NCBI GenBank assembly: GCA_002269645.1
Contig: NIVC01001909.1
Location: 1-64,000, forward strand
Origin: Macrostomum lignano
Lineage: Eukaryota
Direction of reading: 5' to 3'
Length of the DNA: 64,000 nt
In this document: positions 47,449 to 63,480 of the stretch, one piece after another
Numbering within the stretch: the stretch's first letter is position 1
How the letters are laid out: every line of letters begins with the position of its first letter
Translations under genes and position numbers: made by a program
Notes under the pieces: generated by a model
What the model was told of the DNA's origin: nothing
Databases searched by the model: none
Seen by the model: only the letters and a program-made list of their open reading frames with translations

Positions 47449-50400
47449 ATGAGTCCAACTAGCGGTCCAGATGTCATTAATGGTTGGAAAATTGTCACAA
47501 CAGAAGAGACTGTTGTTGAGTCCTACTCTTTAGAGGTAGGGTATGATTAAATTATGATTCGTTTATTAATAGAATTCAGACAGAATTCCAGGATGTCAGA
47601 ATGTCAGAATGTCAGAAGTTCCGGATGTCCGGATGTCCGTATGTCCGGATGTTCGGATGTTTGGATGTCCAGATGTCAGGATGTCAAAATGTCAGGATAT
47701 CAGGATTTCAGAATGTCAGGATGTCAGGATGTCCGGATGTCAGAAGTTCCGGATGTCCGGATGTCCGGATGTCCGGATGTTCGGATGTTCGGATGTCCAG
47801 ATGTCAGGATGTCAAAATGTCAGGATATCAGGATTTCAGAATGTCAGGATGTCAGGATGTCAGGATGTCAGAGACGTCATTTGGGGAGTGGTCGAAGGAA
47901 GCTCGAAGTTTCCTAGGCTCAATACTTCACAACTTTGAGTTAGTGTAATTTTGAGCTTGTGAAAGCGACGCGGTTCGATTTGTGTTCGATTTTGTTGATA
48001 AAACAAAATATTTGAAGCTTCAACCCCCCCCTCGCCTCGCCGCAAATGCAATGGTTGTATTTTTCGACACCCCCCTGTCACTGCAGACGACAATGACAGT
48101 CACCACAGAGTACAGCGACGGGACCAAAACTCAGAGTAAGACGTGCACAACAACAAAGAAAGACAGTTCAGTTGTCACCGGTCTCACCACAAAGCAGGTC
48201 CACTCAGTGTATGGCCAGGACATCAGCTGCATCTCCAAGCAGCTCAATCTTATGCTCAAAGACAACTCATTGGCTGCCGATTACCTGCCAGTGGATGAGG
48301 TCAGCCTGTACACCGGCATGCTGGATGGCATCCTGCTCTGCGCCATGGTCAACCTGCTCCAGCCGGACACCATCGACCTCAGCGCCGTGACCAGACGTTC
48401 CGACCTGAATAATTGTCCACCTGAGAATGCAGAGCAGCTGAAGATTCAGAATCGAAATTTAGGATTCTGTTTGTTAAAACCGTTGGGCGTGTCCATTGAT
48501 AGCTTGAAAGTTCAAGAGATGCTGGAAAAGGGCTGTGTATTCGCTCTGACCAGCATACTTATTCAAGTGCTGCGATTAACTACGATTGGTAGAATGAATT
48601 TCAAGGAACACGAAGTGTTGGTGTACCTGTTCGATGGGTGGTCGAATCCCGAGGAAGCCAGGTGTGAATTATTTACTTGGAGTTCAGTATCTTTTCGTGG
48701 TGGTTTCAAACTGTGTCTCAACCTGTCTCTCAATCTATGTCTCGATCTGCGTCTCAATCTGTCTCAGTCTGTCTCAATCTGTGTCTCAGTCTGTGTCTCA
48801 GTCTGTGTCTCAATCTGGGTCTCAGTCTGTGTCTCAGTCTGTGTCTCAGTCTGTGTCTCAATCTGTGTCTCAATCTGTCTCAGTCTGTCTCAATCTGTGT
48901 CTCAGTCTGTCTCAGTCTGTGTCTCAGTCTGTGTCTCAATCTGGGTCTCAGTCTGTGTCTCAGTCTGTGTCTCAGTCTGTGTCTCAGTCTGTGTCTCAGT
49001 CTGTGTCTCAACCTGTGTCTCAGTCTGTGTCTCAGTCTGTGTCTCAGTCTGTGTCTCAATCTGTGTCTCAGTCTGTCTCAATCTGTGTCTCGATCTGTGT
49101 CTCAATCTGTCTCAGTCTGTCTCAATCTGTGTCTCAATCTGTGTCTCAGTCTGTCTCAATCTGTGTCTCAATCTGTGTCTCAGTCTGTGTCTCAGTCTGT
49201 GTCTCAGTCTGTGTCTTAATCTGTGTCTCAGTCTGTGTCTCAGTCTGTGTCTCAGTCTGTGTCTCAGTCTGTGTCTCAACCTGTGTCTCAGTCTGTATCT
49301 CGATCTGTGTCTCAGTCTGTGTCTCAATCTGTGTCTTAATCTGTGTCTCGATCTGTGTCTCGATCTGTGTCTCAGTCTCATTCTGTCTCAATCTGTGTCT
49401 CGATCTGTGTCTCAGTCTGTGTCTCAGTCCGTGTCTGAGTCTGTGTCTTAATTCTTGTTTTTTATTACCTGCCCTAATGGCCAAATGTCGAACCGACAGC
49501 TCAGCCGCAGCTATCTGAAGGCTTCCACTAGTAGGCTACAACCCCTTTTCCGTGATGGATGATCTGTAAGCTTAAGCTCAGTGAGTAAGCAAAGTTCTTC
49601 TTGAAGTTCTCTTGCTAGCCAACTGGGAATGTTTCACAAAATCATAACAAATGGAGAGTTGAAATTTTTTTCGCATCATCCGCAGAGAGATTCTTGCCAC
49701 CGGCCGTGAAGAGATGCTACTCCGCTGGGTGAACTACCAGATGAAACAGGCAGGAACCGATCTCGAGGTGAAAGAGGTCGGCAAGAGCTTAGCAGACTGC
49801 AGCATCTACGCCAACCTGCTCTGGGCAGTCTGTCCTATCGCCAAGCGGGGCGCCCTCATGCCCATTGGCGACGTCTTGAAGCCGGACAGTTTCGTCACCC
49901 GGGCGGAACGCGTGATTTCTAACGCCAGCAAGTTGAACATCGCTGACGTAATCACGCCGCAGCACATCGCCCACGCTGGCGAAGAGACGGACACGATAGC
50001 TGGTCTGCACCGAGTCTCTCTGAATGCCGCCTTTCTCTACAGCATATTCTCCAGCTATCCCAATATTAAGGTGCCGAAAATGAAGACACCAACGCCGTCA
50101 ACGGACGCCGATGCTGTAGTAGACGAATCGCTCAGAGAGCAGCTGAGATCCTGGTGCAAACGCGGCGCCACCGAGGAGACTCTGATCCGCTGGCTGAACT
50201 CGTTCGGACCCTCGGATCCTGTGCAGTCGATTGAATCCGATCTGTGCAACGGCAGCGTCCTGCTCCAGGTGAGAACCGATCGATTAGCTAATCGATCAAT
50301 CAAGGGATTTTTATCAATTAACTTACTGCTTTAATCAAGGTGTGGGAAGCCATGATCCCCGGCTCGGTCGCGTGGTCCAAGGTAAATCTCAAAGTCTACA

Positions 50401-52496
50401 GCTCGACGGTAGTGCAGAATACTAAGCGCAAATTCCAATGGATGTGCAACTGCGAAGAGGTGCTCAACTGCGCCATCAAGGCGGGCATCCCCAGAAACTG
50501 CTGCAGCCCGGCCGAACTAGCGAGCGGCCACGCAAAGAACACCATGTCGCTGGTGTTTCAAATGATGCGCCTGCACGCGCAGCTGTCGCGGAAGTGCACA
50601 ATCAGCGGAATCGGCAGAGGAAAAAAAGTAGCCGACCTCGACGACGCCGAACTGGTGAAATGGTTCAACACCAAGATTTCTACTTTTGGTTCCGATTTTC
50701 AACTGACGAATCTAGGAGTGAGTCAAAACTTTCAGTGACTTTTCTAATCAAAGTTTTTAGCGGAGTAGTAAAGCGTCCGACTCACCCGCCAAAGGCTCCT
50801 GAGTTTGATTCTATGCACGTATCATTGGGCTCGTGCATCAAATGAAATAGTCAACTTGAGGCGCCAAGGTGGCTCCAAAGCATAATCAAACCTCCAAGGG
50901 GATGATCTAATCTGCATGGGGATGATCCAACCTCCATGGGGGATGATCCTACCTCCATGGGGGATGATCCTACCTCCATGGGGGATGATCCAACCTCCAT
51001 GGGGGATGATCCAACTTCCATGGGGGATGATCCAACCTCCAAGGGATAATCTAATCTGCAAGGGGATGATCCAACCTCCATGAAGATAATCCAATCTCTA
51101 TGGAGATGATCCAACCTCCTCCATGGGGATAATACAACCTCTATGGGAATGATCTACTCTCCATGGAGATGAGCCAACCTGTATGGGAATGATCCAACCT
51201 CTATGGGCATGATCTAATCTCCATGGAGATGAGCCAACCTCCATGGGAATGATCCAACCTTCAAGGCGTAGACCAAACCCCTATTTAAACTGCTGCCTTG
51301 ATTTGACGGTTAGGGGGCTCCCAAATCCGTCAAGTAGTCCGTCACTAAGTACGCTCGTAGTTTTAGCTTGATACTTATCGAATTATCTCTTAATCAAAGA
51401 AGTAAAATAAACACGCACACAGGATTTGCGACTGAAGAACACCAACGTTATTGGATATTTTGGCGAGAGACTTCTCGTAGAGATTGGTCTATGCTTCCGA
51501 TTCACTGAGCACTCTCATCAGAAGCAGAGTGGAGAAACTCCAGCACTGCCACCGCCGTCTCCGCTGCCGGCACTACCGGCGCCACCGCCGCCGCCGCCGC
51601 CGCCGCCTCCACCGCCTCCTCCACCGCCACCGCCGCCACCACCACCTCAGTCTCCGCCGCCGCCACCACCGCCACCACCACCGCCACCTCCGCAGGAAAC
51701 CCAGCTAGTTTTGAAGCCACCGCAGCAGGTGGTGCCACAAAAGACTCCGACGCCACCGCCGCCGCCGACGCCGCCGCCGCCACCTCCACAGTCTCCAAAG
51801 AATTCGCCGCAACAGAAACCTTCGTTGCCAGGGGCTGGTAGCAAAGCGTCTGAACAGCCGAAACTTTTGAAAGACAGCGGCTCAGGAACTAGCAAATCGT
51901 CTAACCAAATGAGCACCCTTGCCGTACCGCAGAAGCAACCGCAAAACTCAGGCGGAAAAGGTAATTCGTCGAGTGGAAAAACATCCGGTAATTCGTCGAG
52001 TGGAAAGACGGCCGGCAATTCGTCGATCGGGAAGACGTCCGGCAATTCGACGAGCGGAAAGACGTCCGGAAATTCGACGAGCGGGAAACCTTCCGGCAAC
52101 CGATCGTATACCAGTTTCACCAGTACGTCTTCAAAATCATCGAAGAGCTACAGCAAGACGACATCATCTTCTAGCTACTCCAAGTGGTCGTATGGCAACC
52201 GGAACGCAGCTGATGAAGATCAGGAAAATGCGATTGAGGAGGCTGAAACTCAGGAGACGCCCGATCTGCAGGATCTCGAGAGCGCTAACAACGATCCCAA
52301 CGACGGCGACTGGATATTCGAGAAGGTGTCGCCTGTTTCCGGTGAAGCGTTGACGCAGTTCTCTGTCGCCGCGATTCTCATGTTCAACAAGGCTGGCATC
52401 GTTGTGTACGCCAGTCACCTGGGTCCCGACACCGATTCTACTGTGTACCGCAGCATTCTGATGGAGCTCAACGCGCTGTCCTTGAAGAAGGCCTAA
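47449..52496 (+). CDS. Plastin/fimbrin-like protein A (4 CH domains, no EF-hands, polyproline insert in CH4), 5 exons, ~898 aa
   Basis: Exons 47449-47535, 48087-48661, 49686-50268, 50340-50717 and 51423-52496 (phases 0, 2, 0, 0). CH motifs: DGILLCAMVNLLQPDTID, LLRWVNYQM...[23 protein letters not shown]...DLCNGSVLLQVWEAMIPGSVAWSKVN, DDAELVKWFNTKI and AILMFNKAGIVVYA. Exon 1 is inferred from ATG, donor and phase. Confidence 0.85.
47590..47872. repeat. 8-bp GATGTCAG/GATGTCCG repeat, gene A intron 1
   Basis: Visible tandem repeat with an internal larger duplication. Confidence 0.92.
48705..49450. repeat. 12-bp CTCAGTCTGTGT repeat, gene A intron 2
   Basis: About 60 units. Confidence 0.95.
49465..49525 (-). 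mobile_element. Truncated fragment of the SINE family seen at 35288-35619
   Basis: ACCGACAGCTCAGCCGCAGCTAT and ATCTGAAGGCT are shared with 35368-35402. Confidence 0.65.
50757..50815 (+). mobile_element. tRNA-like SINE head fragment
   Basis: TAGCGGAGTAGTAAAGCGTCCGACTCAC...GAGTTTGATTC shares AGCGTCCGACTCAC with the SINE head at ~35585-35600. Confidence 0.55.
50880..51260. repeat. 21-bp minisatellite (GGGGGATGATCCAACCTCCAT), gene A intron 4
   Basis: About 17 copies. Confidence 0.92.
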
Positions 52497-63100: not shown

Positions 63101-63480
63101 ATCTGACCAAGAGAGCTGAGCTGGTCATCGCCAACGCCGAGAAACTGGGAATTTCTGGCATATTGAGGCCTGAGCACATTACTGAAATTGGGAAAAAGGC
63201 TATAAGTGATCCCAAAGGACTGCACAACATCATTATCAACATGGCTTTCGTCTATCGCATATTTGTGGCTTATCCGAACATCAATGCGCCGAAGATGAAG
63301 GACAAACCAGCCGCTGGTCCGAAAACATCCGCTGCTCCGACACACGAGCAGCGAATCCAGGAGTCGTGCAAATACGGCGCCTCAGAAGAGACTCTGATCC
63401 GCTGGCTGAACTCCTTCGGTCCATCGAGTCCCGTTGTATCACTGCGAACTGACCTGTGCAATGGGCGAGTTCTGCTCGAG
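60179..63480 (+). CDS. Plastin/fimbrin-like protein C, exons 1-3 (truncated by the window end)
   Basis: Exons 60179-60250, 60351-60853 and 62904-63480 with phases 0, 2, 0, as in A and B. Motifs [33 protein letters not shown] and [12 protein letters not shown]. Confidence 0.87.
60860..62889. repeat. Compound (CCAT)n + (CAAT)n + (CTAT)n microsatellite filling gene C intron 2
   Basis: About 80 CCAT units and about 420 CTAT units. Confidence 0.98.

Follow-up and report, generated by a model that had tools for sequence, protein, structure and literature searches.

The closest described relatives of the genes considered here are the plastins or fimbrins (human PLS1-3, yeast Sac6/Fim1 and Arabidopsis FIM1; structures 1pxy, 1rt8 and 7r94), in which four calponin homology (CH) domains in the order CH1-CH2-CH3-CH4 form two actin-binding domains (ABDs). 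In T-plastin, CH4 makes no contact with actin; it docks on the face of CH1 that binds actin and holds ABD1 in an auto-inhibited state, and the CH4 mutants R594A and R594A/R595A show actin binding and bundling above wild type (PMC9478642). Ca2+-independent actin bundling is known for yeast and plant fimbrins, as described in PMC10533516, although these Ca2+-insensitive proteins keep their N-terminal EF-hand headpiece. Here we describe a tandem array of fimbrin-like genes in Macrostomum lignano, found in a window of 64,000 nucleotides (bases 1-64000 of contig NIVC01001909.1), whose products have the same four-domain order but lack the headpiece entirely, and whose CH4 is broken by a linker of 51-576 amino acids (aa). 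The explanation that we favor, with a probability of roughly 0.7, is that these six genes make up an expressed, lineage-restricted, EF-hand-less branch of the fimbrin/plastin family in which CH4 reassembles round the linker, the protein cross-links actin and the linker tunes the latch between CH1 and CH4.

Genes A and B and the start of gene C are collinear on the forward strand and have GT-AG introns. The array continues on the same contig downstream of the window, where genes D to F are found. Listed below are the models rebuilt from the window, followed by the downstream genes.

47449-52496, + strand: gene A, 898 aa, spliced model of 5 exons (47449-47535, 48087-48661, 49686-50268, 50340-50717, 51423-52496)
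53609-59096, + strand: gene B, 1174 aa, spliced model of 5 exons (53609-53722, 53809-54290, 54707-55277, 56337-56696, 57099-59096)
60179-63480, + strand: gene C, the part within the window, spliced model with exons 60179-60250, 60351-60853 and 62904-63480
Record positions ~67331-72370: gene D, PAA62693.1, annotated at 300 aa, a near copy of C
Downstream, same contig: gene E, PAA62694.1, 640 aa
Downstream, same contig: gene F, PAA62695.1, 693 aa

The model of gene B is identical at every residue to GenBank PAA62691.1 (BOX15_Mlig000473g1), which has the same contig coordinates, and gene A agrees with a GenBank gene on this contig in span and length, the two features on which that match is based. 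Gene C runs past the window to record position 66094, and its extended model is PAA62692.1/BOX15_Mlig001366g2 (642 aa). Exon 1 ends in phase 0, exon 2 in phase 2, and exons 3 and 4 in phase 0 in all three genes, so the rebuilt models bear out the claim of collinear paralogues with identical intron phases made in the original prediction, which was drawn from the sequence of the window. The GenBank models of this species stem from genome-guided RNA-seq assembly (StringTie/TACO) and TransDecoder open reading frames (ORFs) (PMC5730564). Related copies are also carried by two other contigs. In gene D the frame of exon 2 shifts after '...SVFSR' and the last exon is intact; this copy is likely a young pseudogene or an assembly error.

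When 1.84 billion representatives were searched exhaustively with a profile, 733 matched, and outside the M. lignano entries the sole match to reach the C-terminus was P0007 (672 aa, 382 bits). The remaining non-family matches are ordinary fimbrins or plastins whose alignment ends at the N-terminal half of CH4. An uninterrupted frame on a 2155-nt intronless Logan contig from SRA run SRR30276804 encodes P0007, and the contig is therefore taken as a transcript, probably from a species other than M. lignano. A word-indexed protein search retrieved M. lignano entries at 99-100% identity and little else apart from a few plastins, with no further family members. The UniProt/MetaClust models of the array genes (P0001-P0005, P0008, P0159, P0165 and P0166) are unreliable: some stop at exon 4, others contain frameshifts, and others again join several tandem copies into one protein (1839-1928 aa). 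They presumably stem from an older assembly.

The membership of the array in the fimbrin family can be seen from both profile and pairwise searches. Proteins A, B and C each match the Pfam CH family (PF00307) in three stretches, with scores of 91.2, 100.8 and 62.3 bits against a gathering cut-off of 26, and beyond CH the Pfam scan of the array proteins returned nothing of note. With phmmer against the PDB, the best match is the Arabidopsis fimbrin core 1pxy (2.6e-37), followed by plastin-3 (2.4e-21) and Schizosaccharomyces pombe fimbrin (2.1e-20); 1rt8 is among the best fimbrin-core matches. The alignment to 1pxy covers CH1 through the first half of CH4 and then ends. Thus CH1-CH3 are detected by Pfam and CH4 is detected in two pieces, the N-terminal half by a hidden Markov model (HMM) and the C-terminal half through a transitive link via P0007, MAFFT alignment, AlphaFold2 (AF2) and Foldseek. 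The four CH domains make up two tandem-CH actin-binding domains, ABD1 (CH1-CH2) and ABD2 (CH3-CH4), the evidence being indirect for the C-terminal half of CH4 in M. lignano. EF-hand families gave no match in A, B, C or P0007 in Pfam at E-values up to 1, whereas the canonical plastins in the same searches do carry them (PF13405, PF13499 and PF00036). Because EF-hands are absent, the array proteins are fimbrin-like and not plastins proper. The prediction of a plastin/fimbrin-like tandem array thus stands as far as the fimbrin core and the tandem arrangement, now of six genes, are concerned, and has to be narrowed with regard to plastins. In the place of the plastin EF-hands, a short N-terminal motif, (V/F/L)-I-N-G-x-x-(I/F), is found in A (47473-47500), C (60197-60224), F and P0007 but not in B.

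The interruption lies within CH4. Linkers were measured between 'GER.LVE..' and a conserved (W/H)-x-F block, and their positions and lengths are as follows.

51423-51488, + strand: start of the gene A last exon, the second helix region of the CH4 N-half, DLRLKNTNVIGYFGERLLVEIG, which aligns to the canonical fimbrin 'FKDxxLxxGxxxxxLxxxV'
51489-52301, + strand: gene A insert, 271 aa, with a poly-Pro tract, 5 copies of a 27-nt unit (GNSSSGKTS), a Ser-rich part and then an acidic part
52302-52496, + strand: gene A C-terminal block, DGDWIFEKV...AILMFNKAGIVVYASHLGPDTD...LNALSLKKA, then stop; putative CH4 helices E to G
57165-58892, + strand: gene B insert, 576 aa, with a core of 49 in-register 30-nt units (LDAKKTSGTQ and variants) at ~57241-58714
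58893-59096, + strand: gene B C-terminal block, IGAWLFDSV...AILMLHKGGIVVYASRLGPDTD...LNALSASAPRSG, then stop
Genes C, D and E: linker of 51 aa, identical in sequence except for one substitution in E
Gene F: linker of 93 aa
P0007: linker of 60 aa

The peptides quoted in the original prediction are all present, and its estimates of ~270 aa (A) and ~580 aa (B) for the separation of the two CH4 parts agree with these measurements. It had also described the A and B inserts as unrelated repeats; they indeed have no sequence relationship to each other. It had further proposed looking beyond the window for a third type of insert in gene C; the 51-aa linker there is non-repetitive. Every linker begins with a basic or Pro-rich part and finishes with an acidic one. 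The gene A insert is 25% Pro, 18% Ser and 10% hydrophobic residues, with runs of ~20 and 13 consecutive prolines plus further PPPPP motifs, a tract that is not found in B, C or F. A K-T-S-G core is common to the repeat units of A (51963-52099) and B (57241-58714), which could be chance or a trace of shared origin. The P0007 linker is not low-complexity and, in the region of residues ~571-610 (nucleotides 1741-1860 of its contig), includes a basic, amphipathic-looking stretch, KLKSAVAAVKSLLHRSKKHKRIGKIIARV; a resemblance to calmodulin-binding helices is speculative.

Ordinary fimbrins can be used to judge how exceptional this is. The distance equivalent to 'FKD' through 'NAKY' is 312 aa in A and 617 aa in B, compared with 33-42 aa in 61 of 63 ordinary fimbrins, so that the contiguous CH4 of the plastin/fimbrin family is not found in A and B. 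The two exceptions have 57 and 86 residues in this segment, both smaller than in A or B, in keeping with the view that such inserts are uncommon. These exceptions, P0084 (~45 extra Ala/Pro-rich residues) and P0110, carry their extra residues in the same CH4 inter-helix region as the array but are single cases, shorter (~15-48 extra residues) and otherwise canonical in sequence. The CH4 inter-helix loop may be a general hotspot for insertions.

Whether the conserved C-terminal block (C-block) is the rest of CH4, as had been predicted, is the question on which our explanation chiefly depends. With an HMM built from the canonical CH4 C-half, the P0007 block reaches 12.8 bits, a value attained by none of 2000 shuffles, and the match falls on the same positions as found with hhalign, which places GEALTQFSVAAILMFNKAGIVVYAS on 'edk..NAkYaISvARKlGa.vF' (local match, P 0.0054). 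Against the C-block HMM of M. lignano the same protein scores 63 bits, and its block is an unambiguous homologue of those of M. lignano. In an unprompted MAFFT alignment with 25 ordinary fimbrins, the C-block falls on their helices E to G and one Gly is invariant; the length from W-x-F to 'FS(V/T)' in C and F equals the canonical spacing. With this mixed alignment, ordinary fimbrins included, AF2 gave an ABD2 model with a mean pLDDT of 85.4 and a pTM of 0.77, in which the C-block forms two long helices at pLDDT 87-93. This model superposes on fimbrin ABD2: in Foldseek it matches 1pxy_B (TMq 0.65, 262 columns, for a model length of 276 columns), the fimbrin ABD2 3byh_B (TMt 0.62, 271 columns) and also the T-plastin ABD2 7r94_F.

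Several points weigh against our explanation, the first of which concern the C-block. Scored with the HMM of the canonical CH4 C-half, the M. lignano C-blocks alone do no better than shuffles (p 0.12-0.26). Pfam gives no match to the C-block alone, and none to CH at E-values up to 10 when the insert is deleted and the two parts of CH4 are joined; the array CH4 is too diverged for Pfam. When AF2 was given an alignment of the family only (5 sequences), CH3 was modeled confidently and CH4 stayed below a pLDDT of 50. The confident model can only be taken as compatibility, not proof, for it leans towards a CH fold because ordinary fimbrins are in its alignment. The insertion point is also ambiguous, falling either before or after a short 'VNWxLV' segment. 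These results could be read as a truncated or degenerate CH4 followed by a novel module peculiar to the family, such as a motif for partner binding ('ASxLGPDTDxxVYRSxLxxLN'). Such a module would fit the very conserved motif and the 3-residue insertion of the C-block, which are not found in ordinary fimbrins. However, through P0007 the block is linked to helix E of canonical fimbrins, where it would be expected, hhalign lands there too, the spacing in C and F is canonical, AF2 and Foldseek return a complete tandem-CH domain, and an isolated CH4 N-half would leave its hydrophobic core exposed. We therefore consider a new module quite unlikely. The part of the original prediction that assigned the block to CH4 is upheld by the P0007 link, MAFFT, the mixed-alignment model and Foldseek, and is not upheld by the M. 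lignano blocks alone against the HMM, by Pfam or by the family-only model. On balance, sequence and model support the C-block behaving as the rest of CH4, with weak direct profile support for the M. lignano copies.

The next group of points concerns whether the inserts are translated. For A and B, the evidence that they are present in transcripts consists of gene models, and the older UniProt models of B, like those of MetaClust, stop precisely where exon 4 does. It can be argued from this that splicing removes the low-complexity stretches, or that transcripts stop short of them, and that the open frames are a by-product of repeats with periods in multiples of three. Minisatellites do fill introns of this genome, and a second frame is also open over most of the B repeat. 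Nevertheless, the RNA-seq-derived GenBank models contain the inserts, and the insert frame is the sole one open over the whole last exon in both A and B. No GTRAG donor occurs within either last exon, while 7 of the 11 donors compared have this form. Repeat periods within these exons are all multiples of 3, whereas those of most intron repeats are not. The CH4 N-flank and the C-block share one frame and are under strong purifying selection, with proportions of nonsynonymous (pN) and synonymous (pS) differences of 0.07-0.26 and 0.67-0.81, respectively; between C and F, the corresponding rates for the CH4 flanks are dN 0.071 and dS 1.70. In addition, all family members have at least 51 aa at this place, and the intronless transcript of P0007 puts a CH4 linker in an mRNA. 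It is thus very likely that the A and B inserts are translated, given the RNA-seq-derived models, the lack of a GTRAG donor and flanks in the same frame with dN far below dS, and removal by splicing or early termination is very unlikely. A real short isoform of B ending at exon 4 was set aside, as such models sit beside the UniProt fusions of 1839-1928 aa; we take them to be truncated predictions, probably from the older fragmented assembly.

Expression data are available for gene B. Its transcript Mlig000473.g1, whose listed length of 3525 nt equals the length of the gene B coding sequence, is in the class 'Testis' of a positional dataset, with counts of 9, 326, 217 and 193 and a log fold change of 4.7, and it is also in the class 'germline_FACS' (Brand et al. 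2020, PMC7336406, Tables S6 and S8). Gene B is testis-specific, being expressed in the testis region and in the germline. That these data cover gene B alone is a further point against extending the explanation to the whole array. They do bear on the idea that the genes are decaying duplicates without function. Gene D, with its disrupted exon 2, would be an instance of this, and the M. lignano genome, a neopolyploid (PMC5730564), abounds in recent duplicates. Yet the frames of A, B, C, E and F are intact over 5 exons, dN is far below dS, and B is expressed in a tissue-specific manner, and we give the idea almost no weight.

Taken together, these results give the following picture. The actin-cross-linking core of fimbrin, ABD1 and ABD2, is kept in each protein, and the surface of CH4 has been opened up between helices C and E to form a hydrophilic linker. 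This linker dates back to the ancestor shared by all members, where it measured ~50-60 aa, with a basic or Pro-rich start and an acidic end; in A and B it then grew to its present length through in-frame expansion of 3-, 27- and 30-nt units, in a genome with exceptionally many tandem repeats. Judging from composition, the linker would be intrinsically disordered, and the two halves of CH4 would reassemble round it into a normal four-helix CH fold. The proteins most likely cross-link actin filaments in sperm formation, with no direct Ca2+ control. A large part of the extra length of A and B probably reflects slippage that has been tolerated, the genome being prone to repeats.

This last step overlaps with an alternative in which the architecture is real and the long inserts are without function, arising by neutral replication slippage in a surface loop of fast-evolving testis paralogues. 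In its favor, the A and B inserts are unrelated and built of young, near-identical units, and 51 aa suffices in C, D and E. Simple and tandem repeats make up 15% of the M. lignano genome (PMC5730564), and reproduction-related genes of the genus evolve fast, according to PMC7336406. On the other side, the frame has been held over 49 units with no stop or frameshift, and all members, even the distant P0007, retain 50 aa or more of linker that goes from basic to acidic. Some role for the basal linker is likely because it is kept in this way. The neutral alternative deserves serious attention, though we think it the less probable account, and much of the extra length is counted as tolerated in our own explanation as well.

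A role for the linker can be proposed by analogy with T-plastin. By our alignment and the numbering of human T-plastin, R594 and R595 are presumably located in helix E ('MARRIG') and hence in the C-block, ~20 residues after the linker. The family residues aligned to these two positions are N, H or R and then K or Q. The linker would most likely tune the CH1-CH4 latch, or offer a handle for phosphorylation or partner binding. The original prediction had suggested, speculatively, that it might set filament spacing as an interchangeable module. By the same analogy, regulation of the latch seems more likely than spacing because CH4 does not touch actin and the linker sits ~20 residues upstream of the helix with the latch residues. 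Actin binding, bundling and the effect on the latch are predictions from sequence, which is the last of the points to be set against the explanation.

A bolder version would see the CH4 loop as a regulatory module that replaces the EF-hand headpiece, with phosphorylation of its Ser/Thr-rich repeats, its charge polarity or bound partners setting the ease with which the cross-linker opens, the poly-Pro tract of A recruiting profilin-actin, and the loops of different paralogues serving different sperm actin structures under sexual selection. Proline tracts of the kind in gene A bind profilin, SH3 or WW domains. By analogy, the proline runs of A could bind profilin or SH3/WW proteins; the likeness to formin FH1 and Ena/VASP is confined to these tracts and involves no homology. 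We regard this version as unlikely, and the more restrained explanation, in which the linker tunes the CH1-CH4 latch, is preferred.

The surroundings of the array are summarized here. Introns and spacers are packed with very long pure micro- and minisatellites, which fits the repeat content reported for the genome. For instance, intron 2 of gene A contains a 12-mer repeated 63 times, that of B (AGT)121, and that of C a 2-kb run of ~509 ATCT units; examples in the window include 54294-54657, 60859-62893, 53104-53346 and 48706-49452, among many more. Gene F is followed by an MFS transporter gene and by a gene of the rRNA adenine dimethylase family (PF00398 RrnaAD). Elsewhere in the window, two further coding regions were seen.

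14717-16467, + strand: exon-like ORFs of a Rab-GAP gene, of which the ORF at 16069-16467 matches Pfam RabGAP-TBC at 4e-38
34051-35211, - strand: a 386-aa ORF for a C2H2 zinc-finger protein, with several zf-C2H2 and zf-H2C2_2 matches and an N-terminus with Gln-, Pro- and Ala-rich tracts

GenBank and UniProt already list the genes, as hypothetical or CH domain-containing proteins, and what they show is a real, if modest, variation on a well-known family. Neither this family nor a split CH4 is described in anything returned by literature searches on Macrostomum fimbrin or calponin homology, on the array gene identifiers and on insertions in fimbrin CH4, in agreement with the earlier remark that no described plastin of this architecture is known. 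The gain lies in annotating the genes correctly and in a hypothesis that can be tested, rather than in a system of a new kind. The array nonetheless offers a clean case of in-frame minisatellite expansion within a folded domain, in paralogues, testis-biased in the case of gene B, of a species used for the study of sperm evolution. CH4 is the regulatory domain of plastin that does not contact actin, and a tandem multigene family that keeps a predicted disordered loop of 50-576 residues within it, while dispensing with EF-hands, would be a natural experiment on how the CH1-CH4 latch controls bundling.

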